Assembly: GCA_904063045.1 (NCBI GenBank)
Contig: CAJFCJ010000001.1
Location: 3,286,001-3,350,000, forward strand
DNA from: Dimorphilus gyrociliatus
Taxonomy: Eukaryota; Animalia; Annelida
Reading direction: 5' to 3'
Length of the DNA stretch: 64,000 nucleotides
Positions 23,107 through 63,623 of the stretch are shown one piece after another (the first letter of the stretch is position 1; each line of letters begins with the position of its first letter). The translations under genes were made by a program, and so were the position numbers. The notes beneath the pieces were generated by a model. It saw only the letters and a program-made list of their open reading frames with translations, was not told the origin of the DNA and searched no databases.

Positions 23107-25286
23107 ATGAGATATGTAAAACTGGTTCTCTTTCGAATGCTTCGATTCTTTAGAACAAAAATTGGATTATCTCTACTTGCACTGATAATTATTCTATTAA
23201 CTGTATTTTTATATATAAAGACTGAGAGTGACTTACAAGAGAATGAGTCCAAGTATGAATTTGAAAGAGAAGTACATTTACTTCAAGAGAAAAGGATTAA
23301 AGCCAGTAAAGAAAGACATAAAACAAAATTAGACGAAATGAAATGTTACCTTCCGGTCTTTACTAGGAATATTTTATCCCCTACCAACAAGACTCCTGCA
23401 ATAAATTCTTGTCAAGAATTATTTAAACCTCTTGTTTTTCTGAAAGCATCCTTTCAATCAGGCTCTCAAGAATGTAAGTTGTCCGTTTTTGAGTTTCAAC
23501 CAGCAGATAAATATACTAAAAAGCCTATAATGACCTTGACAAAGAAAAATTATACGGATAGTTTCAAAGAATTGAAAAGTGATATATTCGAAATAGAATG
23601 TGATAAGCAGAATAAAGATGAGAGTAAAAACCACCCAAAGGACACTAGAATGGAAGAAAACGTACCAAAAAGTCATATATTTATTAATGTACAACCAAAA
23701 AACATTAGTACAAAGGCGAAGAATTTCAATATTCTTCTTCTGACATTGGAAAGCCTATCTAGAGATGAATTTGTTAGGAATTTCATTCAAACATTTTCGT
23801 ATTTGAGAAGCAAACGTTTGAAATCACAGCTTCTGTACGGCTATCAAGCATCGGTAGACGTACTTGATACTGTTTTACCTTTGTTGACAGGTAATCAATT
23901 TCTTTCAATATATTTTGTTAAGTACTGTATATACTGTACATTGTATATAGTTTATACTATATATATATATGTATTTCAATCAAACTATTGTATTTAGGAT
24001 ATAGTACCAAAAAGGCCATGGAGTTTGTTGGTAAAAATCAAGCATCTTTGGCAGACAGTCTACCATTTATATGGAATATTTTTGAACAGCAAAATTACGT
24101 CACACTATTTGCGGAAGATAATGAAAAGAAGACGGTTTTTGAAGAAAAATTGAATGGGTAATACTATTTAAATACATACAAGAATTTCTGCGCATATTAT
24201 CCTTTATCTGTTCTAGATTTGAAGAAAGTCCAGTTAATCATTATATGAAACCATTTTGGTCTATTCATGACAATATTGCTAGTGAATGTCGTCATAACCA
24301 TATATTTCAATATATTCAAGATATGTTTGAAATGTATCCTATTGTTCAGCCAAAATTTGCTGCAGCTTTAATTAAGGCTGAAACTAATATGAGAAATGTG
24401 GATGATTCTCTGGTAAATATGTTGAAATCAATTGAAAAACATCTTGATAAAACTCTGATAATAATAACTTCTACAAACTCTAATAAAATGGTTTGTATTA
24501 TTTGATCTTCTTCTATCTTTTATACAGTATATATGTGACATTTATGCTTATTCTAAATATAGCCAATAACTATGGAAGATGAAGTTGGAAAAAGATCACC
24601 TTTATTACTTGTTAAACCTCCAAAAGATTACTTTACAAATCAATCGAGAAGCATCAATAATTTACAAGAAAATTCTGAAGTTCTTGTCTCACCTTACGAT
24701 GTTCACGCAACTTTATACGATATTGCTGAACCTTTTAAGCATAGCACAGACAATTCCGCGGTCAGTCTCTTTCACAAGATTCCATTGAGATCTTGTAAAG
24801 ACATTAAAATATCGGAAGAACATTGTAGTTGTATACGTTATGGAAAGGAAACGGAAAAAGGTTTAAGCAATAAATTCCAACAAATCATAGTTGACGAAAT
24901 AAACGAAAAGCTTAAAGAATACACCGATATTTGCTCAATGCATTCAACAAATAGAGTTATTAAATCAACACAGTTAATCCTTAATAAGGTAGGTTATCAT
25001 ATTCATAAACATAAATAATAAGTATATAATTACTAAAATCGAATTCTGATTAAATCAACAGATGGCGCAAAATCTTGATAGTGAATATCACGAAATAGAA
25101 ATTGAGACTAATCCGCACAAAGCTCAATACAATTCAATAGTGGAGTTTAATAAAAAACTATCAAAGATAAGTTTAATAAATGATATTGTAAGGATAAATT
25201 CAAAAAGAAATCAAGCCAATTGCGTCATTGAAAAAGATCGTAGTCTAAGACCTTTTTGTGTGTGTAAACCAAAGAGAGATCCTTAA
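23107..25286 (+). CDS. DUF229-family type II membrane protein (sulfatase/alkaline-phosphatase-like fold), about 5 exons, ~630 aa
   Basis: N-terminal TM helix (IGLSLLALIIILLTVFLYI). Family motifs NILLLTLESLSRDEF, LPFIWNIFEQQNYVTLFAED, G|FEESPVNHYMKPFW, LENLQENSEVLVSPYDVHATL-like and EEHCSC. Short GT-AG introns. Confidence 0.85.
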
Positions 25287-26009: not shown

Positions 26010-26263
26010 TAACCCATTGGCTCAGGAAACTGGCTGTAAAAACATGTACAATTGATACAACTGCTACAACAGTTACAACAAAGAACAAATACACAGTTTG
26101 CAATGCTGATTACACTCTCAACAATGTTGATAAATGCATTCAATGTTCTCAATCTGGAACAATTTATTCAGAATGTACGACAAATGAAAAGCAAATAAAT
26201 TGTTTACAATTTGAATGCGGATCTAATGTATTGAAAAATAACGATCTTAAATGTAAATGTTGC
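26010..26263 (+). pseudogene. Orphan decayed fragment of exon 9 of a copy-B-like surface-protein gene
   Basis: Aligns by eye to 41335-41585 (aaactgg.tgtaaaa.catgtaca.ttgatacaact...ctctcaacaatg...tgtttacaattt.gatg.ggatctaa). It has indels and several lost cysteines. Confidence 0.8.
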
Positions 26264-26279
26264 AGTAGACATTATTATA

Positions 26280-27148: not shown

Positions 27149-30100
27149 ATGGAGAAAAATCACTTCATTTTTCTCGTTCTCTTGGCAGTGATTTATAACT
27201 ATAGTAAAATATCTTAATATTCATTTTTCACATAGAAATCTATAACTAATTTATTAAAATTATTTAAGACGTTGACTCGGCTACATCTCCAACCAATGAG
27301 ATTTATAATTGTGAAGAAAGACAGAGCGGAGATAAGAGCGTTTTTTGTGGAGTTTGTAAGACTGGTTCAATTCTTACAAAGGATAAAAAAAATTGCCTTA
27401 GTAATATTTTATTAATTTTCTACAACCAATCAAATTGAATAATGATAATTTTTCATTTGTTAGAATGTCCAGATAACTGTGATGAGTCGTACTGTTTAGA
27501 AAGACAATCTTGGACTGATATCAATGACGCAACGAATTGTACAAGTTGTAAGAGTAGCTATTTCCTTAAAGGAGAACTTTGTGAAAGTATACTTTCTAGA
27601 AATGAACTAATTAATTAATTAATTAATTAAAATTATTGTTTATAGAATGTCCCATTGGATGTAAAAATTGTACTACTGAAAATGAATGTGACGAATGTTT
27701 ATCCAATTACGTATTCAAGTCGCCTGTTAAAGATTGTACGGCTTGTCCATCTAATTGTTTAAGGTGTTCTTGGAATATCATAGATAAGAAATCTGAATGC
27801 GAATTTTGTTCTGAAGGATACGTTTTAGATGATAAGAAAACTTGTACTTGTAAGTAATTGAAACGTTTCTTGAAATTTTATTGCTATAAACGATTATGTT
27901 TCAGCGTGTGGCAGCAATTGTCTATCTTGCAGTTTTATTCAAGGAAAAGGCATCGAATGTAATAGATGTCATCCAAATATGTATATAACAACTGGTACCT
28001 CGGTAGAGTGTAAATTATGCTCATCAGCATTACCTGGTTGTAAAAGATGTTCAAACGAGGATACTTGTATTGAGTGTTTATCTTCGAGCTATTCACTCAG
28101 TTCAAGCGGAAAGTGCGAATCTTGTTCACCTATTCATGCAGCATGTATAAGCTGTGACGTTACCAGCGGCTCAAAGAAATGTTCAAAATGTTCAAGTGGT
28201 TATTACGTTAAGGATGATTCTTGTGCATCTTGTTCGAGGAATTGTGATACCTGCAGAGAAACAAACGACAAACTTGAATGTACCAAATGTAAGACAGACT
28301 ATACTGTTATAAAACAAAATAATTGTGATAGATGCCCTGACAATTGTTTGGATTGTGGAATTTCTAACGATAAGCTAGTCTGTAAATCGAACATGTGTTC
28401 TCCAGGATATACATTAAATGACGATAAATCATGTGCTAAATGTCCCAATAATTGCAAAGCTTGTACATGGAGTACTTCGAATTCAAGAACTGAATGTAAT
28501 GGAAACAGTGCTAGTCACTCTTGTGTTGAAAATGAGAATGGGAAATCATGGACAAGAAAGAGTGATGGAACGTGTGTTGGTAAGTTGATAACTCTTAAGT
28601 ATTCTTGATTTATATATAACTATTTTTCCTTACAGCTTGCCCAGATAAATGTTTCAAATGCTACTTTACTGACGAAACTCTGCAACCAATTTGCTATGCT
28701 TCTAAATGTTCTATTAAACACGGTTTTGATGATGCTACAGGTACTTGTTTTGCTTGCCCATCAGGATGTGATTATTGTAAGAGGACACTGAAAGGTGATA
28801 TTTGTCAAAAGTGTAGTGAAAAACATGCACCAAAGTACACAAGTGATAATACAATTGAGTCTTGCGAATGGTGTTCTATTTGGGATTGTGATTATTGTGA
28901 AGTCCTTGACGGTTCTGTCAAATGTAGAAGATCTCCTTGTGCATCGAAAGAAGTTAGTTCCGCTAACAAAAAATTTTCATTTACTAATAATGATTGCTCT
29001 GGTAACTGTCCAATTGATTCGAGCTGCGATTCAGGGAAGATTAATGATGAAAATGAAATTTGCTATTGTCGATCGTGTCCAGCAGGATCGGCTGTAATCC
29101 TAGTTGGTTCAAATGCTGGAGTGTGTAAAAGCTGTGGTCCCGATTGCGAAAAATGCGAATTGAATAGTGTCAAAAACGACGTCGAATGCAAAACTTGTAA
29201 AGGAGTTAAACAATGGCTTACTGTTGAAGTGGGCCCTCAGGCTGTATCAGTTAAGGGATGCTTTGGTATCTTTCTCACATTTTTATGGTTTTTATAAGCT
29301 ATAGTAACCTAATTCTCTTTCATTATAGATTGTTCGGCAGCTCAGCCTCATTGTAAACAATTGGAGTACGCTGGAAATCCACCTATTTGCAGGTGTAAAA
29401 TGAACAATTGCATAGGAGATCAAACTCAAAATTCACCAACAAAAAGACATACTGTTATTCAAGAAACTTCAGGCAGTCAGAGATGCAGAGGTAAAGGAAT
29501 ATCTCCTTATTCATAAATATGATATTTAACAATTAGATTTTCAGGTTGTTCGGATTTGTTTCCCAAAGCTTTGTGGTGTAGAGGAAATTATGCTAGCGAA
29601 TCATTAGAAAGCTGCCAGCAGGGATATCAAAAGCTTTCTGGTACCAATACTTGTAAAGGTATAGTTTTTTTTCATTGCAAATATACAGCACTTTAGATTA
29701 TATAGTCTTTTATATTTCTTAGCTTATCCTGACAATTGCGCAAACTGGGGTGATACACAATCTACTTCTGATGTCAGTAGAGTTGACTGCTTGAAATGCA
29801 TTCCTGGATATTATCTTTTTAACGGCAATTGTATATCTTGTTCTAGCGTTTTCGAGAACTGTCTTGAATGTGCTAGAGAGCCATCCAGTGTAGTATGCAC
29901 TGAGTGCTCTTCAGGGTCTGGTTTTAATTGTAAAACTCCTTGTACATCGTCTCCTATCCCGGATTGTGGTACAATGTGGGCTACTACAAATGCCAATACC
30001 TGTAAATGTAAAACTTGCTCTGGTAGTTCTAATCCCCAGAATCTTCACATCGTTGCTCCATATGTTGCATCTGTCCTCGGAAGTTCCTGTGGAGGAAAAA

Positions 30101-33100
30101 CAATGACAATATCTGGTTGTAACAAATATGGCAGTGGATCTCCAGATATTTGTGTCAAATGTAACGTCGATCATGCTCTATCTCCTTTAAGAGATGCTTG
30201 CTTAGGTACAAGCTTTTTTAAATTAGGATGTAAAGAAGGATATTCATTCGCTTTCGATCCAAGTAGTGTTCTTTGCAGAGTTCCTAAAGACGGTTTTATG
30301 GAGCATTCTGTCAAAAATAATCCTCCCATAAAGGTTGCTGATGATAATCTGGCAAATTCTGGGAGCGGTTGTACAGGCTACCTTTCGATAAATTCTGATA
30401 GCAGTTCAGATGGGAGATGTGGTGGATGTGAAACTGGGAAAGTTATTGATGTTTTATCGGAGAAAAAATATACATGTACAAGTTGTTCTACAACAGGCTT
30501 CCCTAACTGTGAATTTGCAGTAGCATATAAAGGATCTTGTCGATGTGGCAGGTGTAAAACGAGTAATTCTATTGCTTATGTTATGAGACCGGATCAGAGA
30601 GGCTGCGTTGAATGTTTAGGTATTGTTGATTGCTCCGTTTACACCCTACGTTTACTTGATGGCGAATTGAAATGTGCTTGTGCTAGTTGCGGTAATAACA
30701 AACTTGTAAATAGCGACGGTTTCAGCTGTATTGACTGCAGCAGTAAGCTTTGCTCACCTGGAGAGGTAAAAGCTGTTGATTCAAAGTGTGAATGTTCTTG
30801 TAATGACCAACAATTGATGAAAAATAACACTAATGGATGCGTTTCGTGTGGTACAAATTCGGATTTACCAAATTGCAAAAGTGGTCATTACAAATTACTT
30901 GAAAATGATCAATGTGGATGCTCTGAATGCATTTCTGGGCATGTCTTGAAGTCTGATCAATCAGCATGTTTAAGTTGTACAAAAACTACCCCTGGAAATA
31001 TAATACCCAACTGCAAGGTTTGCTTGGAAAGTACGACAGTATCTGGAACAATAGATAAATGTATTTCATGTGATGATGGATATGCTTTAAATCCTGCAGA
31101 TGGAAATTTAGCAGCGACTTGTCTGAGTTGCCAATCTGGATGTCAAAATTGTACTGTTGATAGAAGCAAGTCTCCTCCAACCACAGAGAGGAAATGTACA
31201 GCATGTAAAACAGGCTATACTTTAAATACTCAAGGAACTTGCATTAGGTGTCCCACAGAACCGAAAACTTGTAGCGAGTGTCGAATCGATCCTAAAGATA
31301 GTACTAATACTTTGTGTACACAGTTTGGTTGTGGATCGAATGCCTTAAGAGATTCAGATTTTAAATGTGAATCCTGTAAGATTAGCAACTGTGCAAAATG
31401 CGTCAAAGATGTTAACAACGTTTTCAAATGTCTCGATTGTAATGAAAAATTCTTTATGGATAAAGATGGAACGTGTAAACAATGTATTAGTGGCTGTGAT
31501 TTTTGCGTGAATGGTGAAACGTGTATTCCGAGTGGTTGTATAGAAGGATTCATTAGACATAGAACAGATGGAACTTGCCAGAAATGCACAGGTGATGGTG
31601 TTTCTAGATGCATTTATAAAGATACAACAACCGATGTATTAGTACCAATCATATGTAAAGAAGGTTTTAGATTAAATACACAGCCAACAATCAACGTTTG
31701 TGAAGGCAAGTAGACAAAATAAAATTCATTCAATTGAATTCAATTAATATTTTATACTTTTTAATTTTAGCTTGCAGTGAAAATTGTAAGAAATGTGAAA
31801 TAGCTGGAAAGGATAAATGTGATACAGATGGATGTAAAACTGGATTTTTTTTTGATATCTCTGATCAACTGTGCTACGAAAATAATCCTGAATGCTTAAT
31901 TTCTACTAGGATAAACGGCAAGATTGTTTGCTCATCGTGCAATGAAACAACTTCAGTTTTAGTTGATAATGAATGCAAACCGTGTCCGAATGAATGTAGC
32001 GGTTGTACATCAAATAATAATCAATTTACGTGTTCTTCTTGCAAGGGCGGCTATTATAAAAGAGACGACGGAGTTTGCCTTGAATGCCCTTCTGGTTGTT
32101 CTTCTTGTGCAATAGTTGAGGGAAGAGTGGCTTGTGAAGATTGCTTACAAGGATACAGTCTTCAAGGTGAAAGTTGTACTCAATGTGGAATCAGCGAATG
32201 TGATAAATGTAAGTTCGATTCGGGAAATTTAGCCTCCTGTGAGAAATGCTCTAGCAAATTCTATTTAAATACTGATGATTGCGGATCTTGTCCAGAATTT
32301 TGTGCAGAATGTACCTTTAATCAAAAGTATACCTGTACTAAATGCTATGATAAATATGCAAAGAGTTTGGATGGAAAGTGCATTAAATGTTCATCAAATT
32401 GCGCAATTTGTACTGCAAAACCTGATAAATCGACTAAATGTATAAAATGCATATCAAGTGAATTTTCTTTAGGACTCGATGGCGTATGTAGACCTTGCAA
32501 TAAGGCCATATTCAAAAATTGCTCAATCTGTGAATCTGAAAATGGGAAAGACAGGCCAAAATGTTTATCATGCGCAAAAGGATATACATTAAAAGACGAT
32601 GAATCGGGATGCGTTAAATGTTCCATTTCAGGATGTAATGACTGCAGTCATGGAAGAGTTTGTTTAAAATGTAAGAGAGGAACCTATTTGCATAATTACG
32701 ATAGAGAATGCGCTCGTAAGTAATTAATTTTAACGTTTGAAGAAGTGAAAAGATCAGGTCATAATGTTTTTTAATATTTTTACAGGTAAATGTTACGAAT
32801 GTCAAGGAAATGAAGAAGAGTGCGGGAAAGATATTTCCAAAATACAAAATATTACAAATACAGTAAAACTCATCGATTGCGGTATTGGAGACTGTTGGGT
32901 ACATAGAAGGGAAGAGGGAGACGTAGTTACATTTGAGAGATCTTGTTCGAAGCAAACATGTTCTTCAGGAACAGTTGAAGTCAATTGTAAGTCTGTGGAG
33001 GGAAAGAAAGAATGTTCAAGATGTTGTAAGGGACCAAAATGTAATACGTGGTTCTTGGACGGCTCTGCTGGATCAAATAAACTCAGTATTTCATATGTTC

Positions 33101-33138
33101 TATGTTTAATAAGTATTATACTTTTATCAATTAGTTAA
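27149..33138 (+). CDS. Copy A: intact 1791-aa GPI-type surface protein, CXXC/furin-like repeats plus C-terminal Ly6/uPAR domain (exons 27149-27203, 27269-27400, 27464-27586, 27646-27849, 27905-28579, 28636-29265, 29329-29490, 29545-29658, 29723-31705, 31771-32715, 32786-33138)
   Basis: Signal peptide MEKNHFIFLVLLAVIYNY, then dozens of CxxC-x(2-3)-CxxC units. The last exon is KCYEC...CCKGPKCN (Ly6/uPAR CCxxxxCN), then GSAG and a hydrophobic tail with no cytoplasmic region. Exons sum to 5376 nt with all introns in phase 1. Confidence 0.88.
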
Positions 33139-33659: not shown

Positions 33660-34800
33660 ATTCTTATAAGTGGTGGTTGTGCTACTGGATTTACTCTAGA
33701 TTTTTCTCCAACAAAATATGATTGTACATCATGTACTGCTGCTGGACTAGATCATTGCACTTTTGCTGTATCTTCGGGAGATACATGTATGTGTGGAAGA
33801 TGTACTGCTGATGTAGCAGGAAAAGTATATCATAAACATCCTACACTACCAGGATGCACACAAAATGATGAAATTCCCAATTGTTCTTCTCACACATTGA
33901 AACTTAAAAATGGAGCTTATGTAGTAGCATGGACAGCCTGTTCAGGTGTAAATGTTTTGGCTGAAGATGGATTGTCATGTGTGGCTTGCTCAAAAACTTG
34001 TACTGGAGGTTCAAAAGTAGTTGCTGCTGGTGCATCAACATGTACATGTGATTGTGCTGCTGTTGGTTTCGTAAATACTGCTGGAGATGATTGTATTACT
34101 TGTGCAACAGCTGGAAAAGCAGGATGTTCAGAGGTACACCTAAATGGAGCAACATGGGAGTGCAAAACATGCAATGTCAAACATGTTCTGTACCATCTGG
34201 TGGAAGTGGTCTTGTTTGTTTAACATGTTCAAATAAGTTTTATTTGAATAGTGATGATTGTGGCCAATGTCCGAAGTTCTGTAAAGAATGTTCATACAAT
34301 CAAAAATACGAATGTATAAAGTGTTATGAGAGATATGCAAAGGCATCAAATGGAACATGTGTACCATGTCCATCAAATTGTGAGACATGTATAGCCAATG
34401 CAGATAAGACAACAAGATGTACAAAATGCATATCAAATCATTTTCTTTAAAAACTGATGGAACTTGTGTACCATGTTCAGAAGCTGCTTTTGCAAATTGT
34501 GCAACTGGTGGACCAAACTGTAATTGTAATGAAATGAAAGTCAGTAATGATGCTATTTGAAAGGTTGATTTTTTATTTATGATAAAAATTATGATGCGTC
34601 TCTCAATACAAGCTGATGACTTTTGATGATCGTTGCCAATAGTTTTTGTTATATTATTAATATTGAAAAATGATTGATTTGCTCTTTCCAGAAGAATATT
34701 TTTTTATTATTGGGTCACATAAAGAAATATTGTATATAGTATAATAAATTTCTATGGTGTTCAAGAGAGAAATGTTTTAGTATTTCATTAATTTGAGAGG
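33660..34800 (+). pseudogene. Internally deleted remnant of a copy-D-like gene (part of exon 9 fused to part of exon 10, fused to 3' flank)
   Basis: 33660-34176 matches ~60890-61400, 34173-34518 matches ~62675-63020, and 34520-34800 matches the non-coding flank ~63705-63985. Confidence 0.88.
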
Positions 34801-37195: not shown

Positions 37196-40100
37196 ATGAG
37201 AACAATAGTTATCCTCTTTTTAGCAATTATTCTTCAGGGTAAATGTCTGTTCAATATCACATTCATAAAAAAAGTCACGTTTGCTTTAATCTTACTTTAG
37301 AATCAAGAGGTGCAACTGTTCCAACAACTAATGTTTACAACTGCGATGCTGGACAGACTGGACTTCGACGTGTAACTTGTGGTATGTGTTCTTCGGGAAG
37401 AATACCAACTAAAGATAAGTTAAAATGTTTACGTAAGTCTGTTGTTTTTTCATTTTGTCAATATTTCAAAGATATTGTGTTCTAGTCATTTATTGTTTAA
37501 ATAGAATGTCCAAATTGGTGTATAAAAGGCGAGTGCGTTGAGAAATCTTCTTGGACAAATGAAAATGACGCAACTGATTGTAAAGCTTGCACTGAACACT
37601 ACTATCTTAAAGGGACAGTTTGCGAAGGTAAAGTGATTTTTAAGACAATGAAATAAGTTTTATACAGTATACAGCATTACAGCAAATTGTAGTACTTGAA
37701 AAATTCTATATACTGTATTACAGAATGTTCAATTGGGTGCAAAAATTGTACTGATGCAACTATTTGCAACGCTTGTTATTCAAATTATGTACTGAAAGAT
37801 ACGCCTAAGGAATGTGCCTCTTGCCCATCGAATTGTGTTGCCTGCAATTGGAATACCGCAAACGCAGCAGCCGAATGTTCGACATGTAAAGATGAGTTTG
37901 TTGTCAACGATAAAAAAACTTGTACAGGTCAGTTTCTTTTTTCTTTGACACAATAGATACAGTATATCTTACGGCTTTTCTCATTATAAACATGACGCAT
38001 TTTCAGCTTGTGGATCGTACTGTAAGTCATGCTCATACTCCAAAGATAACGGTGTTAGTTGTAGTAGCTGCTATTCTAATGCCTACAAAGAAACAAATAG
38101 TGCTGTTTCCACTTGCAAATTATGCTCAACAGCAATCTCTGGCTGTAAAAGGTGTACAAATAAAGATACTTGTACTGAGTGCTTATCAAAAGCATATTCT
38201 ATTACATCTTCAAATAAATGTGAAGCGTGTAGCACAGTTTCTGCATCGTGCATAGAATGTGATGCAAGTAGTGGAGTTAACAAATGTAAAAAATGCATGA
38301 GTGGTTATTACTTAAACTCTGGCTCCTGTTCTCTATGTCCACGAAATTGTGATACTTGCGAACAAAGGGACAATATTATTAAATGCACAAAGTGTAAAGT
38401 AGATTATACAATTGTTGATGTAAAGAGCTGTGATAGATGTCCAGATAATTGTCTCCAGTGCCATGTAGTAGTGGACAAATTGGTTTGTAGAACAGGAGGA
38501 TGTGCATCTAAATATGCATTAAATTCGAATAATCTATGTAGTAAATGTCCAGACAATTGCAATGCATGCACCTGGAACTCGGCAAATTCCAGAACTGAAT
38601 GTAACGGAAATGGCGCAAGTCATTCTTGCGTTGAAAATTTTGGAGGAAGATCTTGGGGGAGAAAAAATGATGGAACCTGTGTTTGTAAGTTTGTTTCTAT
38701 CGTTGTTGTCTTCTTTTTTAATGGACATTAAATTTTCATTATGTAATTTTATTAATATAAAATTTTGCAGCTTGCCCAAGTAATTGTCTAAAATGCTACT
38801 TTAAAATTACTTCATCTTCTACTCCAGTATGTTATGCTTCTAAATGTGCTAAAGGATTCGGTTTTGATGATACTACTGGAACATGTTTTCCATGTCAAAC
38901 AGGGTGTGATTATTGTAAAAAAGCATCGACTAGTTCCATATGTCAAAAATGTAGTGAAAAATATGCACCTAAATTCGTTACTGGAACATCAAATATAGAA
39001 ACGTGTATTTCATGTTCCTCATTAAGCAATTGCGATCATTGTGAAGTTATTGGAAATGATGTAAAATGTAGAAGATCACCGTGTGCATCAAAGTCGACTG
39101 GAACAAATAAGAAATTTTCATTTTCAAGTAGTACTTGTGCTACTGCATGTCCAGCAGATAGTTCTTGCCCGTCGGCTGATGTTCATGATGAGAATGAAAT
39201 TTGTTACTGTAGGAACTGTCCATCAGGATCAGTAACAGTTACAGCAGGAGCGAATGCAGGTGTTTGTAAAAGTTGCGGAATCGACTGCGAGGAATGTGTA
39301 TTGTCTGCTAATAAAGAAGATGTTGAGTGTAGGACATGTAAAGGATCGAAACAATGGGTTACAGTGGAAACAGGCTCTCCCGCTGCTATTGTAAGAGGAT
39401 GTTATGGTATGTATTATTAAATCAATGCTAATATTCATTAATAAGTAATTAATCTATATATGAGTTCTTTAATTTAATGCAAAATAAAAATAATAATTTT
39501 ATTTAAAGACTGTTCAATTGCTTCTCCGATGTGTAAACTATTTGAATACACCGGTAGTCCTGCTATTTGCAAATGTAAAACTGGTGAATGCATAGGTGAT
39601 ATATCTCATACCTCACCAAATGATAGACTGACTGTCTTACAATCTCCAACCAATCACCAAGAGTGCAAAGGTTAGTAATAATATAATAATCATCTCAATT
39701 GATTTAAAATAAATGTGTTTAAAGCTTGTCATGAACATGTATCAAACGCTTTATGGTGCGGTGGAACATATGCAATGCCTACTCTTGCCACATGTAAATT
39801 TGGTTATATGAGAGATTGTGGTGGAACGGCTTGCTTGAGTATGTTGAAAAGACTTACTTTATAAATCCATTCTGTTCATATATTTATATTTTATTTTATG
39901 TTATAATACAGAAATAGTGCCAAATTGTGCCTTCGCTTTCCCCATACCTTCCCCAGTTTCTCCTTCAATAGCCACTTGCACACAATGTGCAACCAATGCT
40001 TACTATGATCCAACAACTGGCTTGTGTCCAATATGTAATGCAGACCCTACAAGAGCTTCTTGCACGTCATGTATTTATGATTCAGGAAATGTGCTGTGTA

Positions 40101-43100
40101 CTGGTTGTAATTCACCTAGTAAAAAGGGATACAAATGTGGAACAACTGATTGTGGAACATCAATACCAAACTGTGCTACACCTTGGGCTATGGATGATTC
40201 CGGTTCAACTTGTAAATGCCATCTATGTACTGGTCCTTCGACGGAAACTGTAACACCTCTTGATGCTAATCAATTCTTTGGAACAGGATGTGGTGCACCG
40301 CAATCCGCTGCAATACCCAATTGTGACACTCAGGCTATAGTACCATCTCCATCAGCAACAGATTATTGTCAAATATGCAGTACAGGATATACAACAAAGG
40401 CTGGAAATGCTGCATGTGAAGACATCACTCCATTTACTAGTACATGCCAAACAGGATATATTAGTTCCTGGTGAACTTACTTGTGGGCTTCCTTCTCCAA
40501 ACCATTTTACAGATACAACAACACCCATTAATGTACCTGTTGCTGTGGATCCAGGAAGTAGATCACCCAGTGGATGTCTAGGCTATCTAGCTATTGAAGG
40601 CGTTACAGCTAGTGATGGTCGGTGTGGTGCGTGTCCTACTGGTCAAGAATTGGAAGTTGTTTCACCCTCCCAATATAAATGCACAGCTTGTACAGTTTCG
40701 GGAAGAGATAACTGTGAATTTGTTGTTGCGCATAATGGAGGTTGTAGGTGTGGAAGATGCACTGCTGATGCTTCACCAAACTTTTTTATTATGAAACCTG
40801 ATCACTCTAGTTGTCTGCAGTGCACTCTAATAACAGATTGTACGACTCATACATTACGTTTAGCAAATGGTGGATACCTTTGTGCTTGTGCTGCTTGCGG
40901 TATGGGCAGAATACTAAGCGCTGATGGATTCCATTGTGTGGATTGCAGTTCCTCAACATGTAGTGGTGGAACGATAGCAGTTAATTCAGGAACAACTTGT
41001 TCATGCGAATGTGCAGCTGGATCATTTAAAAAGGCAGATGGTACCGGTTGCGTTCCTTGTACTGCGGCAAATTTTGCCAACTGTCAAACTAATGGGTTTA
41101 AATTGAATTCTGATAATACATGTGGTTGTAGTGGTTGTGCAACAGGTTACGTAATGAAATCAGATAAAAGTGCTTGTCTCAGCTGTACAGCCACTACACC
41201 TGGAGGAATTACTCCCAATTGTAAAACATGTACAGAAAGTTTAGCAACTGCTGGAAGTATTGATAAGTGTACATTGTGTAATGATCACTTTGCACTGAAA
41301 GCCGAAACAGCACCAACTGCTCCTAGTTGTATGGCTTGTGAAACTGGTTGTAAAACATGTACAGTTGATACAACTACTACACCAGCTACAACAAGTAATA
41401 AATGCAGAGTTTGTAATCCAGGCTACGCTCTCAACAATGCTGGCAAATGTATTCAATGTCCACAAACGCCGACAATTTGTTCTGAATGTTTGATAAATCC
41501 TGCAGATGAAACACAAACACTTTGTTTACAATTTGGATGTGGATCTAACGCATTGCGAGATAACGATTTTAAATGTGAAGGCTGTTCAATTGCCAATTGT
41601 CAAAAATGTGTTAAAGATATTGGAAACACATTCAAATGTTTAAAATGTAATGATAAGCATTATATGGATTCAGTTGGATCATGTCAAACTTGTGTGGCAG
41701 ATTGTGATTTCTGCATTGATGGAACCACTTGTTTACCGAATGGATGTAAAGAAGGTTTTATCAGACATAGGACAGAGGGAATTTGCATATCCTGTACAGG
41801 AAGCGGCGTTTCAAGATGTATTTACAGCAATGCCCAATCAGATACTCTAGTACCAAAAGTATGTAAGACAGGTTATATACTGAATATAGGAGTAACACCT
41901 CACGTTTGCCAGAGTAGGTTTCAATATTTTCTCATAGTTTACTGATAAAACATTTCATAACTATTATATTTTTACTTATTCAGAATGTGATTCAAACTGT
42001 AAAAGTTGTCCTACAAATGGAAAAGATAAGTGTGATTCTGGACAATGTAACAGTGGATACATCTATGACTCTACTGATCAAAAGTGTTACCCTAACAAAT
42101 TTGGATGCCTAACTTCAACAAGAAGTAATGGTAAAACAACTTGTCAATCATGTAATACAGCAACTTCAGTACTTTCCAATGGTGAATGTAAAACATGTCC
42201 TACTGGTTGCAGTGGATGTTCATTTGATGCTGCAACAAGCAAATTTACTTGTTCATCTTGTAAAGCACAATACTACAAGACAAATGATAATTTGTGTTCG
42301 CCTTGTCCAACTGGTTGCAGTGCTTGTTCTCTCAATGGAGCATCAGTTGAATGTACAAGTTGTCTCGCCACTTATGGTTTAAAAGGAACTTCATGTGAGT
42401 TATGTGGTATTGGAGAATGTCAAACATGTTCTGCTTCATCTGGAGGAAGCTCCTTGGTCTGCATGTCCTGTTCAAGTAAATTCTATTTGAGTAATGAGGA
42501 TTGTGGTCAATGTCCGAAATTCTGTAAAGAATGTTCATACAATCAAAAATATGAATGTACAAAGTGTTATGACAGATATGCAAAGGCATCGGATGGAACT
42601 TGTGTACCGTGTCCATCAAATTGTGAAATATGTACAGCCAATGCAGATAAGACAACAAGATGTACAAAATGCATATCTAATTCATATTCGTTAAAAACTG
42701 ATGGAACTTGTTCACTATGTTCTGAAGCTGCGTTTGCAAATTGTGCAACTTGTGGACCAACTCCTTCAGGTGGAAAATCGAAATGTGATATGTGTAGTGG
42801 AGGATTTACTCTGCAAGATGATAAACTAGCGTGCGTTTCATGTTTAATTATTGGTTGTGATATGTGTGCACATGGTCGAGTATGTTCGAAATGTAAATCA
42901 GGATTCTATTTACATAATTATGACAGAGAATGTGCAAGTTTGTTTTCTCTCTCTATTCTGAAATTTTTGAGGATTTCTTGATATACAGTATATTACTAAT
43001 GTAATGATATTTTGTTTCAGGAAAATGTTTTGAGTGTAAAGGAAATCAAGCAGACTGCGGAAATGATATATCCAGTACCAAGAATTCAACTAACAAAGTG

Positions 43101-43385
43101 AAGGTAATCGATTGTGGAATTGGTGATTGTTGGGCCTATAGAACAGAAGTTTCAGGAACAATAACATTTGCAAGAGGATGCTCAAATGAAACTTGCACTT
43201 CGTCAAATGAGAATGAAAATTGTAAAACAGTACAGGGGAAGAAAGAATGCGTACAATGCTGTAGAGGAGAAAGATGTAACACTTGGGCATTGGATGGTAA
43301 AGCAGGAGTTGCTGGTCTTGTGTCTTCAACTCTATTGATTGTATTGTGCATTGTTGAATCTTTTGCTCAGATGAGCCTTGTATAA
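37196..43385 (+). CDS. Copy B: same 11-exon surface protein, with one frameshift at ~40455-40460 in exon 9
   Basis: Signal peptide MRTIVILFLAIILQG. The exons I translated are open with phase-1 introns. Exon 9 is split between ORFs 39917-40474 and 40407-41945. The last exon has CCRGERCN and a hydrophobic tail. Confidence 0.85.
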
Positions 43386-44934: not shown

Positions 44935-47330
44935 ACACTAAAACATTTACTAGACAACAGAAACTTTTTTCGCACCTGTATTAGATACGCGAAATAGTTA
45001 GTAACTAGTTGTCATTTTCCGAACTCAAATTTTTTCTGTACCCTCTTTATTTGCTATTTTAGCAACGTTATACACAAAAAAAGATTTCCCTAATCCTCTT
45101 CTGAATATTTTGGAAGTGTTATTTAAAACTTCCGCAATCTTGAGTTATCCGATTGCTTTTCTCTACCTTTGTCATTTGACATACACAATTACTATCCATA
45201 TAATATCCAGTATTACATTTCAAATATTTCAGAGTATCACCAATTTGTTCAACACAAATGTCACAATCAGTAAGAGAAGCACTTAAATCACAATTAAAAT
45301 CGCTATCTCTTAGAGCACCAGTTACACATCCAAATGGAGACATACTGCTCTTGTCTGATTATCAAGGTCAATGTTGCAAACGTAGCAGATGTGTGGTGAC
45401 TGTGGACATTGAACACAGAGTCCTATATTATTGAGTGCATAACCATATGAAGAAACTATACATTTATTATCAGTTGTAGCTGAATCTCCTTATGCGTCAA
45501 TTGTGCAGGTTGTACATCCTGTACCACATGTTGTGCATTACGGATTAGTTCTTGGGGTTGAAGATGTATGCAATTCATATCCACTGTCACAGTCAGAGAA
45601 AGCTGATATTTGACCAACTGGAAAAGATCTATCTTTCTCTTCATTTACAAAATGTTAAATTCAATTTAATATTGATTTGTTCAGAATGACAGTTGAAATG
45701 TCAGTTTTTATTCATTTAGTATTAGTTACAAATGAATTAAATGATTGGGTTAGCTGGATTGAAATTGTTTAATGGAGAGATCCACTGACTTGAGAGGCTG
45801 GAATGTTTACAGAGAGTCCTATAATAGGATTTAGCTTAAAAGATATCTGATGAAACATGGTTGAATATATGAAACTTGAAACTGAACAATGTGTTGTTAA
45901 TATGAAGAATATGAATACAGTTGTAGATTATTGCTTGTCTGTGCCTATCGGGTCGAATTTGTGTTTGAATGGAACACATTTCTGGGAAACTTATTATGAA
46001 CATTATCTAAATATATTTTCAGATAAAAGAAGCAGAGGCGTTGGGATTAGCGAGTGTGGGCAATTCGAATTGTTCATAAATTCTGTTAAGTTAATGCGCC
46101 CACACAAAAATGCAGAAAAGGAGATTAGCAGTCTGTAATGGTATATGTCAATAAGACAGTTTTCTTGAGCTAATAGTAACTGTGAATGCTCCATAGATCA
46201 AAAGCAAAGAAACATTTTGAAAAAATGTTCATTTAAAATGGTATCATTCAATTGGCAATAATTTTCATTCAATATTTGTAAATTACTGTTTCTTTAGCAA
46301 AAATTAAAAATGTTTAATCTCTGCGAATTCCAAAAAATGAACATAAAGAGAAAATTTTCCCTACAAAGACAAACCTACAAAATGATTACAAAACAAATGA
46401 AGACAAATAAATATAGTATAGAGAATAATTTAATCAGAAATGATAACATTTCTATATACAGTTTTTTTTAAAAAAACTTGATAATAAACGTCATAACTTT
46501 AACATTAATGAATACTACTTTTTTGCATAGTTTAAAGATATTAATACTATACAACAGTATATTGTATATATTGTAGAAGAAAATATTAACATTTCTTGCA
46601 TTACTTAACTTGAAATATTACTCCAAATATATTTAATTCCATTTAGAAATCCAAACAATAAAATATACTTTTTGGGTTTTGGAGGGGAGCGTTTGAAATC
46701 AAAGTGTAAAATATGTCTTTCATCACACTTATCATTTCACAATTGCAGTTTAATCACTGATGCTCTCTGTTTGTATAATAAAATAAAACAAAAAACACTG
46801 GACAATACCACGCTCATCACAAAAGACTATTACAATAAAACAGACTTTCTAACATTATAAATAATAAGTAAAAATATGAATATAAATATTTCAAAATTAT
46901 TTAGTTCATTCTTCAAAATCAGATCAGAAGAAAAATTTTAATTAAACTTTCTTATAAGGAAATGATAACATTTAAATATTTCACAAATATCAAAAATTCT
47001 TTTGCAAAAGTTATATTAATTTCTATTATGGCAACAAATAAATTATTTTCTCTATTCATATGCAAATTTCTCCAATAATAACCTCTTTACAACTCCAAAA
47101 CAAGAACATAGAAACCAAAGAGTATAAATACAGTATAATTCTCATTTCTTCAAACTACACATAATCAGTGCCAGCCAGAAAATATTTCTTTCAAAAAACA
47201 AGTACAGTAAAACATTTTAATGACAAAATAACAAAACTAAAATATTTTCGATTCCAACATAAAGGGCTGATTAAAGAATAATTCATGAAGAACTTTGTCT
47301 TTGTAGCACTCTGTGCTGTGGTCATTCAAT
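44935..47330 (+). repeat. Upstream segment duplicated with ~55925-57622 (shared 5' flank of copies C and D)
   Basis: Colinear matches such as aaacatttactaga...gtaactagttgtc...ttagcaacgtt, aatgcgccca and cataatcagtgccagccagaaaatatttcttt, running into the signal-peptide exon. Confidence 0.8.
45177..45629 (-). pseudogene. Inverted fragment of copy-D-type exon 9, inserted in the upstream region of copy C
   Basis: The reverse complement aligns with ~61495-61950 (FGC..ALRDSDF.C...CDICV.QIGDTLK.LKCN.GYYMDSN). It lies within a ~670-bp insert (45113-45782) that is absent at the homologous site of copy D (aatattttg|cactgacttg, 56074/56075). Confidence 0.88.
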
Positions 47331-47746
47331 ATAAGTTCAACAAATTTTTTCATATGAATATTCATTGTATTATTTTGTATCTTAACTCTGACATCATTTG
47401 TAACTCATTGCAAAACCAATAACAGACTCACAAGCGGCCACAGTGCCAAGCAGTGATGTGTATACTTGCGAAACTGGACAAACAGGAGCGCGAACAACAA
47501 CATGTGGAATGTGCTCTAGTGGAAGAATTCCTTCATTGAATCGACTTAAATGTTTCAGTAAGTTAACAAAATAACACAAAGACAAAAAATGATAGTTATG
47601 TATTTACAAAAACAGAATGCCCAGAATTCTGTTCAAAAGGAAAATGTACACTGAAAATTGATGTATCAGATGAAAATGACGCAACATTATGTTTGCAATG
47701 TAACAAACACTATTTTTTGGATAGTGCAAAATGTTCAGGTATTCAC

Positions 47747-47947
47747 GGATACAACGTCCCCAAATTCATGGTTTAACCCTAACCCTAACCTAGCCCTTGT
47801 CTCTCTCTAACCTTTTTGATTATCCCTAACCCTTAGATGGAACCCCCCTAACAATAAATCAAAAGCTACTTTACTCCTGCTAACCATTTTTCAATCAGAA
47901 ATGTTGTTTTCAAAAATCTCACTTGGGGACGTTTTGTGTCGGCCCTA
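47747..47947. mobile_element. 201-bp MITE (hAT-like) with 8-bp target-site duplication, containing CCCTAA repeats
   Basis: Flanked by GTATTCAC at 47739-47746 and 47948-47955. Imperfect TIRs share AACGTCCCCAA, and the right end reads TAGGG on the minus strand. It is absent from the homologous intron of copy D. Confidence 0.75.
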
Positions 47948-49004
47948 GTATTCACACACTATACTTTCTATCATTTATTCCTTTATATTTGATCTTATTG
48001 AAGAATTCTCAACTGGATGCAGAAACTGTACAAGTGCAACATCATGTCTTGACTGTTACTCCAACTATGCAATGAATGATGCCACTAGACAGTGCACCAT
48101 CTAACTGTGTTAAATGCACTTGGAATTCCGCCACTTCGAATGCTGATTGTGACACTTGTGCTGATAGATATGTCAAAAAAGACACCGGCTGCACATGAAA
48201 ATATTTTCAAAGTATATCATAAACCAAACAGTTATAGCTAAAATTTCTATCAGCTTGTCTATCCTACTGTAAATCTTGTACTTATAACAAAGACACTGGT
48301 GTCAGTTGCAGTTCTTGTGATACAAATGTATACAAGGAAACAACCAAAAATATCAACACTTCTAAATTTTGCTCCACTGCAATTTCCGGTTGCAACAAGT
48401 GTTCTGATAAAGATACATGTACTGAATGCTTGTCTAAAGCCTTCACTGTAACAACACCAAACAAGTGTGAAACATGTAGTTCCATTCATTCTGCATGCAC
48501 TGAATGTGATGCAGGCTGTGGCACCAATGAAAGTAAAACATGTAAGAGTGACTATTATCTAAAAGATGATTCCTGTTCTGTCTGTCCAAGAAACTGTGAC
48601 ACCTGTGAAGAAACAAATAGCATTGTTAAATGAACGAAATGTAAAGTTGACTACACAGTAGTTGATCTGAAGAGTTGTGATAGATGTCCAGATAATTGTC
48701 TTGAATGCGAAGTTTCTGGTAGTAAACTAGTGTGTAAATCTGGCAGATGTGCATCAAAATATGCTCTAACTTGGATAACTTGTGCTCAAAGTGTCCTGAT
48801 AATTGTAATGCATGTTCTTGGAATTCATCAAATACTAGAACAGAATGTCGTGGAACAGATGCCGGTCATTCATTTGTTGAAAATGAAGCTGGTAAGTCAT
48901 GGGGAAGAAAAAGATGGAAAATGTATAGGTTAGTCAAATTACATTCTCAAAAAAAGTACAATTGATTGATATACTCTATGAAATGTAATGAAAAACATTG
49001 TATA

Positions 49005-50450
49005 AAGTGGACAAGATGTATATATGGACACCATAAATTTTGATAGGCCAATTTTTAATTAACGGTTAAAATTATTTGTCCTCTGCAAATTACTATTTTT
49101 TGTCTAAATTTATATAGAAAAAGTGTTAAATTTACTTAATATTGAAAAAAATTTAAGAAAATGATAATATTTTGTGAACATTATTATTAGCAAAAATTTT
49201 TAATAATTTTCATAAGTTTTTTCTTTATTTGGCCGCGCGACATGTTTATTGGAACATTGAGTTGACATCCGGTTTGACATTCAAATAGACGTCTCAAACA
49301 AAAAATTTTTCAACTTTTTTCCTGTTTTAAGTTAAGTTAATTAGTTATTGAATATTCAAAATTACTGTACATAATTTATATTATATTTTTTTAATTATGG
49401 TTTGGAGTCAAGATATAAGAGATTTGGTAATCAAGAAATATAGTGAAATAGGGAAATTAAGGGCAACAGCAATAGTTTTAGGGAATGGCACCATCATCAG
49501 TTAGCAACATCTTGAAGTACAAGCAGCCAGAACAAGACAATAGGGGAGGTCCGAAGAAGCTTGCCGACAGAGAGATAGTGAGGATGAAAAGAATTGTAAA
49601 GAAACTGAAAGATAACAAGCAAAGAGTGACAGCAGCAAAGATATTAAAGGAATTAGAAGTAGATATAAGCATAAGAACAATACAGAGGGAGCTGAAAAGA
49701 CAAAATTTTAAGTATAAAAGATTCAGGCAAAGAACTGATCTCACCTCTAAAGACTGTAAATGCAGAAAAGCATACTGCCTCAAAGTTATTAGCGAAAATC
49801 TAGACTGGTCTAGGGTTATTTTTACTGATGAGGCTAGGTTTTCGCTAAGTGGACCTGACGATTTTAGGACTTGGACCAGTAACAGCGAAAAGGACTTCAG
49901 GGTCACGAAAAATATGGGGAGAGGTGGAGTATTGGTGTGGGGGTTGATAACCTCTGACAGCATATTTGAAGTCTGGAGGATAAGGAGCAAGCTGAATGCT
50001 GAAAACTATAGCTCCTTCATTGTGGAAGATGTTCTGCTTGTCATAGAAGAAATTGAGGCAAAAATGGGCAGGCAGTACATCTTCCAGCAAGACAATGCTG
50101 GCTGTCACACTGCAAGAAAAACGAAAAGGGCCTTTAAAACCAATAACATCAAACCCATAGATTGGCCAGCAAGGAGCCCTGATCTCAGCCCAATAGAGAA
50201 CATGTGGCATCTGACCAAGACAATGGTCTATGATGGTCCACAGTTCGAGACAGAGGATGAACTGTGGGAAAAGATTAAGAAATGCTCCTACGAGGTTATC
50301 AACAGAAATCCACTCTTGTTGCCAAGTTTATATGAGGGAATGGGCCGTAGAATAAGCAAATGTATAGAAAGAGAGGGTGGGCACATACAAAAATAGACCA
50401 AAAATTTAACAATTGAACATTGTTCCAATAAACATGTCGCGGCCAAATAA
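49005..50450 (+). mobile_element. Tc1/mariner element with DD34E transposase (ATG 49397, +1 frameshift at ~49484, stop 50396)
   Basis: HTH N-terminus MVWSQDIRDLVIKKY...LG/MAPSSVSNIL. Catalytic motifs IFTDEARF, FQQDNAGCH and WPARSPDLSPIE, with 34 residues between D2 and E. Inverted repeat 49225-49256 / 50421-50450. Homology to copy D intron 5 breaks at a TA near 49004. Confidence 0.93.
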
Positions 50451-50578
50451 GCAAGTTATAAATTCAATTAACTTGCCTAAGGTGTGGCCAAGCTATAATT
50501 CAATTAACCTTCACAAATGTTGAATCTTGTAACATCTTGTCAATAAAGATAAATATTTCAGCAACTATAAAGTGATGA

Positions 50579-50773
50579 TTGGATATCAGAGGCAAACCTC
50601 AAAGTATAAAAATCCTCATTATTTTCATTCTAAGTGTACCTATCCGGACCCAAGGATCTGGGAAGGTAACCTGGAAACAACCTCAACTGGAGCCATCTAT
50701 CTACTTCTCAACATTGGAAAGCAGTTTGATAATTTGGCAACGTGCTATTACGAACTATCTTCTCTGCTATTGA
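50579..50773 (+). mobile_element. Possible decayed RTE-type LINE fragment
   Basis: SIKILIIFILSVPI..GS...TW.Q.QLE...IIWQRAITNYLL resembles KI+...LSVLLYGSETW...LE...I.WQD+ITN of RTE RT tails. Confidence 0.45.
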
Positions 50774-53700
50774 ACTCTCACATTGCTACTTGCCTAAGTA
50801 TTCTTATTTTAAATAAACCGTTTTAATTTAAACATTTGTTTAAAGGTTCGAGTAGAACCAGTATGTTGTAACTTACAAACGCATAAATTTACCAAACAAG
50901 AGCAGTACAATACAAATAACATAATTGGAGATTGTGTTCCTGCTGTATCTCCTTCCCCTACCCCAATAATTAATTGTTTACAACAATTTAATAGTCCAGC
51001 TGGAGGTGGTACCGTCCATTGCGAAAGATGTGTTGATGGCAAGGAAGTGGTAGGAAACACAACATATGCTTCTGTAGCTGTGTGCAAAAATAATTGCTTA
51101 TTTGGAGGAGCCGCTGCTGGCTGTTTAATAGCTGATGCAGGCAAAATGATGGAAGATGAAACAATAGACACAATTATTACAGTTGATTTTGCAGCTTTAG
51201 CATCAGGCAACTGCAAATGATATTTAGCGGGAGTGGCAGCACCTATCAAGCAAATGAGGCCTGATGTGGTGGTTGTAATGCTGGATTTTCTCTAGATTAT
51301 TCTCCAACAAAATATGACTGTATATCATGCACTGTTGCTGAATTAGATCATAGAACAGAATGAACTTGCATTCCATGTACTGATGTACTGGAAGCAGAGT
51401 TTCAAGATGTGCATATGAGACAGCAACAAGTGACAACCATACCAAAGATTTGCAAAACAGGATATAAATTAAACATTGCTGTTTCACCAGAAGCATGTGA
51501 AAGTAAGAAGATAATTATAAATGTTACATTTTTGTTTCCAGATTATTAAATATGACTTATATATTTTCAGGGTGTGATCCCAATTGTAAAAGCTGCGAAA
51601 CAAATTGAAAAGACAAGTGTTACTCAGGAAAATGTAATTCTGATTATTTCCTTGATTCTAGTGATCAAAGATGTTACAACAATAAAGCTGGTTGTCTTGC
51701 TTCAACTAGAAGTAATGGAAAGATCACTTGTTCATCATGTAATACAGCAACTTCGGTACTTTCCAATGGTGAATGTAAAACATGTCCTACTGGCTGTAGT
51801 GGATGTTCCTTTGATGCTGCAACAAGCAAATTTACTTGTTCAACATGTATAGCACAATATTACAAAACATCTGATAATTTGTGTTTGCCTTGTCCAACTG
51901 GTTGTAGTGTCTATTCCCTCAATGGCTCAGCAGTCGAATGTACAAGTTGTCTTGCAACATATGGCTTTAAAGGAACTTCAGGTGAGTTGTGTGGTATTGA
52001 AGAATGTCAAATGTGTTCTGTTCCACGCGGTGGAAGGGGTCTTGTTTGTTTAACTTGTTCAAATAAGTTTTATTTGAATAGTGATGATTCAGGTCAATGT
52101 CCGAAATTCTGTAAAGAATGTTCATATAATCAAAAATATGAATGTACAGAGTGTTATGATAGATATGCGAAGGCATCAGATGGAACATGTGTACCATGTC
52201 CATCAAATTGTGAAACATGTACAGCCAATGCAGATAAGACAACAAGATGTACAAAATGCATATCAAAGTCATTTTCTTTAAAAACTGATGGAACTTGTGT
52301 CCCATGTTCAGAAGCTGCTTTTGCAAATTGTGCGACTTGTGGACCAACTCCATCAGGTGGAAAAGCAAAATGTGATATGCAGGAATATTTGCAGCATGTT
52401 TCATTATTGTCAATTCTTTTAGTTTTTAGGCTAGAATTACAAGCAGCAAGTGCTTGAAAAACTGACAGCTATCACTGTAACACTTTATAAATTAGATGTA
52501 TGCTCTTTAGTATTCTTACTGAAGAGCATGAACTATACTTTTATATTCTAATAGAAAAGAAGTGAAAATGTTTATTACTTTTTTCGTTTACTCCTTTTTT
52601 TAAATCTTGTATTTCAAGTTATTTTTGTGAATTTTTGGATGAATGGCATTTGATTTCATTTTCTATGTTTAAAAATTATGAGTGCAATAGAGACTTAAAA
52701 GAGATAACTTATTAGTATTGTTTGAATTTTAATGTTAAGTTTAGAAACTAGAGGTCGGTACTAGAAATAGTAATATCACAAGTTAGTTTGGTATATTTTT
52801 TAATGCTATAACAGCTGAACTTTTCTTTTATTTTTACAAAAGGATTATTCATTATAACTTTTTTATGGTTTTCGCAAAAAACATTAAGAAATTGAATTCA
52901 TTGAAAAATTCCTCTCTAAATTATCATATTCAAGCAAATTTTCTACTGATTTCAGTATGATTCAACATTTGCAGTTGCAGTATATTTCTGTTTTAACTTG
53001 CAAAAAATTTGTAGGTGTCGCTTATAGATCTTATTATAGAGCACGAGTTTCTTTCTATTAATAAATGAAAAGGATTACTAGCATTGTGTCCGCCTGAACT
53101 TGTTATATTTGTTTGATCACGTTCTCTTATTAATGTTATAATCTCAAACTAATTGTAACATACTTCCTAAGCGTTTCATAAACTGTATATTTTAATTAAT
53201 TCCTTGATTCTATCCCTACTGACCTTGGTGTAATGCAGTATTTATTGTATTTAATATATTTATAGTACATATATAAAAAATACATTAGTAGAAAGATTTT
53301 TAACCAATCAGACTTACAAATTGATGATAAAACTTCAAATTAACATTTCATGAATAGACATCAAGATAGAGGCAGACAAAGGGTGACAACAAAGATTTCG
53401 TAAAATTTCATAACATTTTCAACTTGCACAAGAAAGGGTTAAGCAAGATTTTCTTTTATTTATAACGTTGCTAAAATAGCTATTAAAATTATACATTGTA
53501 TTAAAGAATTATTATTAATTATTTACAAAAAAACCCAGCTAAGCGTACTTTGATTGAATAATGGAGAAAAGGGAAAATTCTAAAAATCCCTTTTTGTGGT
53601 TTATTCTTTTAGATTATTAGTACTACTTTGCTCAAGATTGAATGTAAAACATTCAAACATGTCCTTTTTTCTAAACATCTTATATTTTAAATAATTGTCT

Positions 53701-63500: not shown

Positions 63501-63623
63501 CAGTGCTGTAGAGGAGAAAGATGTAATACTTGGGCATTGGATGGTAAAGCAGGCGTAGCAGGATTATTTGCAACATGTTTCATTATTGCTGTATCAAGTA
63601 TCCTTTCCATCTTAATCAATTGA
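57577..63623 (+). CDS. Copy D: intact 1786-aa GPI-type CXXC/furin-like + Ly6/uPAR surface protein (exons 57577-57622, 57712-57843, 57903-58025, 58102-58302, 58360-59037, 59117-59746, 59810-59956, 60021-60137, 60198-62174, 62243-63196, 63268-63623)
   Basis: Signal peptide MKNFVLIALCAVVIQ. All internal exons are multiples of 3 with phase-1 GT-AG introns (5361 nt total). Ends CCRGERCNTWALDGKAGVAGLFATCFIIAVSSILSILIN*. Confidence 0.9.

Follow-up and report, generated by a model that had tools for sequence, protein, structure and literature searches.

The window analysed here, a 64,000-nucleotide stretch of AT-rich animal DNA with short introns from the annelid Dimorphilus gyrociliatus, holds four head-to-tail copies (A, B, C and D, all on the plus strand) of one large gene, and the centre of the encoded protein has diverged strongly between these paralogues while keeping its length and its cysteines. 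Genes A (27149–33138) and D (57577–63623) are intact, B (37196–43385) is transcribed and spliced with a frameshift in exon 9a, and C (about 47404–52454) is a broken copy. Each intact copy has 11 exons, and the proteins of about 1,750–1,900 residues are built of CXXC-type repeats, with cysteine accounting for ~12–15% of residues. The central region is best seen as a block whose loops vary on a constrained scaffold, within a lineage-specific family of probable surface proteins that evolves by tandem birth and death. The term ‘hypervariable’ refers throughout to divergence between paralogues.

The variable block comprises exon 7, exon 8 and exon 9a, which we define as the part of exon 9 from its start up to a GRCG motif; exon 9b is the remainder of that exon. 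On the plus strand, the block spans 29329–30411 in A (exon 7, 29329–29490; exon 8, 29545–29658; exon 9a, 29723–30411), 39509–40616 in B (39509–39670, 39725–39838 and 39912–40616) and 59810–60886 in D (59810–59956, 60021–60137 and 60198–60886). The GRCG motif starts at 30412 in A, 40617 in B and 60887 in D, and the better conserved exon 9b of A extends from 30412 to 31705 on the plus strand. Exon 9a measures 229 full codons (plus a split codon) in A, 229 in D and about 234 plus one extra base in B. The original prediction had the coordinates and the 229-codon lengths of A and D exactly right; its estimate of ~235 codons for B was close in length, but a one-base frameshift was hidden in it.

Beyond the cysteines and a few anchor residues, exon 9a aligns poorly, as had been predicted. 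Amino-acid identity is 25–32% (70/220 residues, 0.32, for A–B; 54/214, 0.25, for A–D; 62/216, 0.29, for B–D), against 51–59% in exon 6 and the rest of exon 9 taken together (0.55, 0.51 and 0.59, respectively), with Fisher p values of 2e-9, 7e-11 and 2e-14. The contrast persists when cysteines are removed, at 0.18–0.24 in exon 9a versus 0.42–0.52. Exons 7 and 8, also expected to be more variable, have intermediate identities among A, B and D (0.48–0.49 and 0.38–0.49), and exons 4 and 5 range from 0.42 to 0.72. The cysteine skeleton is kept: exon 9a has 23 cysteines in each of the three genes, 20 alignment columns are cysteine in all of them, and the anchors P.C...W, CKC..C and C.GY are present. 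The same holds in homologues from other assemblies. When three of these (L002–L004, from Logan assemblies ERR14224704 and SRR23372229) were aligned with A, B and D, 23 cysteines were counted in five of the six sequences and 22 in the sixth, with 17 all-cysteine columns, only four invariant non-cysteine columns and a length of 218–238 residues. The observation of a divergent centre constant in length and cysteines is thus confirmed. Within the block, cysteine makes up 10% of residues versus 14% elsewhere and proline is more frequent, so that the loops are longer than in the rest of the protein. At family depth the contrast is graded and not that of a sharply bounded cassette: the rate at non-cysteine sites is 1.40 in exon 9a and 0.97 in the rest of exon 9, exon 9b contains a second fast patch of low identity, and the final 180 residues evolve most slowly.

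Selection was assessed from the ratio of non-synonymous to synonymous substitutions per site (dN/dS), using pairwise Nei–Gojobori estimates with bootstrap intervals. For A, B and D the outcome is the one that the original prediction had itself set against diversifying selection: silent sites are saturated (proportion of differing synonymous sites, pS, 0.65–0.76), and dN is 0.82–1.02 in exon 9a versus 0.28–0.56 elsewhere, with a nominal exon 9a dN/dS of 0.49–0.66. Deep pairs in general (A, B and D among themselves, and B–F) are saturated, with ratios of 0.37–0.66 that carry little information on selection. Younger pairs are more telling. A fifth copy, E, lies outside the window on the same public contig (GCA_904063045.1, CAJFCJ010000077.1; locus L001), is annotated as DgyrCDS14787 and contains an in-frame stop, frameshifts and deletions; from its sequence it looks like a pseudogene. 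Compared with D block by block around these deletions, the variable block (exon 8 and exon 9a, 256 codons) has a dS of 0.51, a dN of 0.37 and a dN/dS of 0.72 (0.52–0.98), rising to 0.94 at non-cysteine codons, whereas the flanks (764 codons) have a dS of 0.24, a dN of 0.07 and a ratio of 0.27 (0.19–0.36). Between D and C the ratio is 0.75 in the block and 0.19 in exon 10. For the intact D lineage, reconstructed by parsimony from the trio D, C and E, the ratio of non-synonymous to synonymous proportions (pN/pS) is 0.70 in the block versus 0.21 in exon 10; the 15 of 121 codons that differ in all three copies were dropped, which biases the estimate downward.

The same central dip in identity recurs in an unlinked pair, DgyrCDS14465 and DgyrCDS14431 (loci L005 and L006). 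Here dN/dS is 0.77 (0.57–1.01) in the centre versus 0.34 (0.26–0.47) in the flanks, and the second part of exon 9a reaches 1.03 (0.60–1.77), or 1.25 (0.78–2.21) at non-cysteine codons. Altogether, the ratio is raised 3–4-fold over the flanks in three young pairs and in the intact D lineage, and the replacement rate in the block is 3–5 times that of the flanks and near the silent rate. No pair and no part of the block gave a dN/dS significantly above 1 by these estimates and their bootstrap intervals, and the values for non-cysteine codons of the block in young pairs, 0.94–1.25, have intervals that include 1. Of the proposal that the region is under diversifying selection, the accelerated protein evolution on a kept cysteine scaffold stands and extends to the unlinked pair; a ratio significantly above 1 does not. 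On these sequence comparisons, the rates are as compatible with near-neutral loops as with a combination of sites under constraint and sites under positive selection.

The protein that carries the block is most likely a glycosylphosphatidylinositol (GPI)-anchored rod on the cell surface. Genes A, B and D are preceded by candidate signal-peptide exons that have phase-1 donors, and family member P0011 begins with a typical signal peptide; in A, open-reading-frame (ORF) analysis places the ATG of exon 1, with the putative signal peptide, at 27149 on the plus strand. Exon 9 matched no Pfam domain in any of 13 members. An AlphaFold2 model of A exon 9, based on a 13-sequence alignment, has a predicted local distance difference test (pLDDT) score of 80.5 and consists of β-hairpin modules throughout, with values of 68–88 in the variable block outside two loops. 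A Foldseek search with this model returned only EGF or furin-repeat arrays, all weak (best E 1.7e-5). At the other end, the alignment of A exon 11 (32786–33138, plus strand) reveals a 12-cysteine domain with CC....CN at its end; a short polar spacer separates it from a hydrophobic tail. In all six sequences compared, the exon 11 cysteines are invariant, and a stretch of small residues precedes a hydrophobic tail that runs up to the stop codon. Five of six members give a full-length but weak match to the Pfam family QVR (PF17064; best E 0.061), a structure model of exon 11 was too poor for a fold search (pLDDT 50), and a profile search of the PDB with this exon found nothing relevant. By its sequence, exon 11 resembles a Ly6/uPAR domain that carries a GPI-type tail.

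The known members of the family come from Dimorphilus gyrociliatus and a few related assemblies only. When 1.84 billion representatives were searched exhaustively with HMMER, only 26 matches emerged, and those with names are all Dimorphilus gyrociliatus proteins, from at least four contigs. Literature searches found no published description of the family.

We give about an even chance to the explanation that the block is the least constrained part of a rod-like surface protein made of disulfide β-hairpin modules of furin-like or VSP-like type. The architecture would comprise a signal peptide, a rod of modules, a Ly6/uPAR-like domain and a GPI-type tail. Purifying selection would keep the 23 cysteines of the block, their spacing and a few anchor residues, while the loops between these cysteines would be replaced at about the synonymous rate. 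Tandem arrays would turn over by birth and death, and their 3′ parts would be partly homogenised through gene conversion, leaving paralogues that are alike in their N- and C-terminal parts, each with a private central block. Such a block could give each paralogue its own binding specificity or could serve as a tolerant spacer; a paralogue-specific recognition surface and a loosely constrained part of the rod both fit the data.

Several points weigh against reading the block as the least constrained part of the rod. A mean non-cysteine dN/dS near 1 in a region that keeps its structure may hide positively selected sites, and since such a mean can mix these with constrained sites, relaxed constraint is likewise only a possibility. 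In exon 9b, P0008, P0012 and E have duplicated or lost modules, whereas length and cysteine number are kept more tightly in the block, which would be odd for a spacer. Copies C and E are damaged, as B and P0012 may also be, so that part of the excess replacement in the pairs involving them is pseudogene drift. Finally, synonymous divergence between D and E is itself ~2-fold higher in the block (four-fold degenerate sites, p 0.0065), although it is not raised in the second pair.

Diversifying selection is a serious contender, if one to which we assign well under an even chance. The loops of the block would then serve as a surface that recognises microbes, mates or gametes, or self, and new variants would be favoured in each paralogue while the disulfide scaffold was kept. 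A conserved scaffold with replaced loops is what this would produce, and it would suit the 3–4-fold rise in dN/dS over the flanks in every young pair and in the intact D lineage, as well as the values of 1.03 and, at non-cysteine codons, 1.25 in the second part of exon 9a; the 15 of 121 codons dropped from the trio also mean that the D-lineage ratio is biased downward. The legend of Extended Data Fig. 5 in the genome paper (PMC7854359) describes the expanded local gene families of this worm as mostly immune-related, which would favour this reading. Set against these points, no estimate is significantly above 1, family-wide site rates in the block are only about 1.45 times those of the rest of exon 9, and several of the copies compared are pseudogenes.

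A broader form of this idea, which we hold to be rather unlikely, is that the family could be an animal counterpart of the variant surface coats of protists: giant GPI-anchored cysteine-repeat rods with a selection-diversified block, serving in immune or mate and gamete recognition. By this analogy, tandem birth and death together with homogenisation of the flanks would supply new variants.

A further alternative is that the contrast reflects age and not faster protein evolution: the flanks would have been homogenised by gene conversion while the block escaped and retained an older divergence. We consider this improbable as the explanation of the contrast. Conversion, or a much younger age, is indicated for one membrane-proximal part, because B and D resemble each other much more closely at their 3′ ends than in the rest of the genes. 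The 3′ part of D (61586–63562, plus strand; the 3′ end of exon 9 with exons 10 and 11) is 81% identical in DNA to B 41328–43315, protein identity there is 89–96%, and B–D dS is 0.37–0.44 in exons 10–11 versus about 1.8 in exon 9b. Between D and E, DNA identity is 88–93% in the flanks, drops to 58–70% from mid exon 8 to 60870 and returns abruptly at GRCG, and four-fold degenerate sites differ more often in the block (20/68) than in the flanks (40/279), an about two-fold silent excess. An intergenic exon 9b fragment that starts at 33672, exactly at the block border, would also be in keeping with a mosaic. However, D–E dN rises 5-fold in the block and dS at most 2-fold, and DgyrCDS14465/DgyrCDS14431 have no excess at four-fold sites (15/80 in the block versus 34/195). 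Introns 9 and 10, which lie in the conserved flank, are 72–73% identical, having diverged like intron 8 within the block (72%). Trees of exon 9a and exon 9b agree in their main groups, with branches 2–3 times longer for exon 9a.

Gene conversion was therefore rejected as the sole cause of flank similarity, given the divergence of introns 9 and 10 and a dN that rises far beyond dS; conversion adds to that similarity but does not account for the contrast. The agreement of the trees for exon 9a and exon 9b means that the block descended vertically, and swapping of cassettes between lineages is ruled out. Searches with tblastn, using the blocks of A, B and D, found no silent donor copies of the block in the window outside genes A–D. 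Variation from donor cassettes, of the VSG or vlsE type, is ruled out by this absence of spare block copies in the window.

An artefact, whether from misalignment of the short cysteine repeats, from faulty exon models or from the decay of dead copies, to which the damage in B, C and E and the larger number of gapped columns in the exon 9a alignment (40/250 versus 19/439) might point, is very improbable and largely refuted, as A and D are intact, the exon 9 frames of the L002–L004 homologues are open too, the cysteines of six sequences fall into matching columns, RNA-derived contigs back the splice sites, and a pair at other loci repeats the pattern.

Among known systems, one likeness is to the variant-specific surface proteins (VSPs) of Giardia (PF03302), which are extracellular, CXXC-dense and encoded by multigene families in which one part varies and the membrane-proximal end is conserved. 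Exon 10 of A matches VSP weakly (E 2.2e-4; 20.7 bits, below the Pfam cut-off of 31.4), and neighbours of the block in a protein atlas include clusters annotated as VSP or Furin-like_2, which serve as a lead only. VSPs end in a transmembrane helix and a short, conserved tail in the cytoplasm, and their variation is expressed through switching among genes in a protist. The proteins described here differ in ending with a Ly6-like domain and a hydrophobic tail that reaches the stop codon, and their exon 9 has no VSP match in the 13 members. The exon 9 model, a chain of disulfide β-hairpins, also recalls the furin-like repeats of R-spondin Fu1–Fu2 and of receptor cysteine-rich domains, as well as EGF arrays. 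Foldseek matched NELL EGF arrays, Pfs25/Pvs25, megalin and RSPO2 Fu1–Fu2 (probability 0.69–0.72; target template-modelling (TM) score 0.37–0.39), but only three matches had E below 0.001, the query TM score was about 0.1, and no Pfam furin-like or EGF family was matched. This model-based resemblance would point to shared building blocks rather than established homology.

The C-terminal domain is reminiscent of GPI-anchored Ly6/uPAR (three-finger) proteins and Quiver (PF17064) in being compact, with all cysteines conserved, a CC....CN end and a hydrophobic tail. Ly6/uPAR domains usually have 10 cysteines. Exon 11 has 12, its best QVR match (E 0.061) is far under the cut-off, and whereas known Ly6 proteins are small, here the domain ends a protein of ~1,800 residues. 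The immobilisation antigens of ciliates (Paramecium, Tetrahymena and Ichthyophthirius) are large, GPI-anchored, multigene proteins in which cysteines recur periodically and the centre varies more than the conserved ends. The family shares no sequence relation with them in any search and has the standard code, short phase-1 introns of animal type and animal gene neighbours. In conotoxins and defensins, likewise, cysteine framework and length are kept and the intervening residues are replaced fast among paralogues, and dN/dS above 1 has been demonstrated. Here the ratio is not significantly above 1, and the block is a region of ~320 residues within a giant protein, not a small peptide.

Copy B is transcribed and its exon model is right, because spliced RNA-derived contigs from public runs skip exactly the predicted introns at 39671–39724, 39839–39911, 41914–41983 and 42938–43020. 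Exon 9 of B is 2002 nt long (1 mod 3). Reading frames and RNA-derived contigs place a +1 frameshift, an extra base near 40460–40463, and a premature TGA at 40472–40474 (together 40460–40474, plus strand). Three runs from two studies yielded contigs, one of which is spliced elsewhere, that cross the site without gap or difference; the frameshift is therefore real, and an assembly error is ruled out as its source. The RNA is spliced through to exon 11 despite the TGA inside the variable block. From this sequence, B would be either an expressed pseudogene or a gene for a truncated product without an anchor. In exon 11 (43021–43303), 12 positions distinguish B from one spliced contig derived from RNA (run X2, record 16), which probably stems from another transcribed paralogue, such as D.

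The 11 exons of A were assigned by reading ORFs and splice sites, and their positions are homologous to the RNA-confirmed junctions of B. All introns checked are in phase 1 and measure 54–71 nt in A and 54–108 nt across copies. Intron 9 of A (31706–31770) is apparently of the GC–AG type (GCAAGT...AG), judging by frame and homology; the homologous donor in B and D is GT. In the homologue L003 (3832–5982, from SRR23372229), exons 8 and 9 form one ORF lacking intron 8.

Three of the five copies at or near the locus are damaged, C and E being broken and B frameshifted. Copy C has in-frame stops and has lost exons 6–8 and the first half of exon 9a; at the site of the lost exons lies a transposase ORF (49485–50396; 303 residues) of the Tc1/mariner type (DDE_3, E 5.5e-13). 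The second half of its variable block remains at 50909–51244 (plus strand), with 48% protein identity to D, versus 92% in exon 10. The public model of E, DgyrCDS14787 (975 residues; L001 10001–14203), contains invented introns that span the stop, the frameshifts and two deletions. Loose intergenic pieces of exon 9b-type sequence occur at 26057–26266, 33672–34390 and 45173–45627 (minus strand). The piece at 33672 is 82% identical to D and begins precisely at the border between variable block and exon 9b, where the jump in E identity and the P0012 deletion also start; because all three begin there, this border may be a recurrent breakpoint. Within exon 9b, the protein from L005 (DgyrCDS14465; P0008 residues about 1000–1290) has about four tandem cysteine modules of ~45–60 residues each, and P0012 and E are deleted in the same part, so that module number varies there and not in the variable block. 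Upstream of the array, ORFs at 3231–3827 and 23107–23997 belong to unrelated neighbours that match ankyrin repeats (E 4.5e-13) and DUF229 (E 1.7e-9), respectively.

If the block is merely a tolerant spacer, the family would be an ordinary case of constraint spread unevenly over a repeat protein of one lineage. In both cases the family is unannotated, its largest exon is without a Pfam domain, and public gene models are partly wrong, as where the model of copy E bridges frameshifts. If the block is instead a recognition surface, it would define a receptor-like family not described before, in a spiralian whose genome is among the smallest of animals and has otherwise shed much, yet retains about ten of these 6-kb genes. 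The family would then also be a compact system in which to study how binding loops can diversify on a disulfide scaffold.

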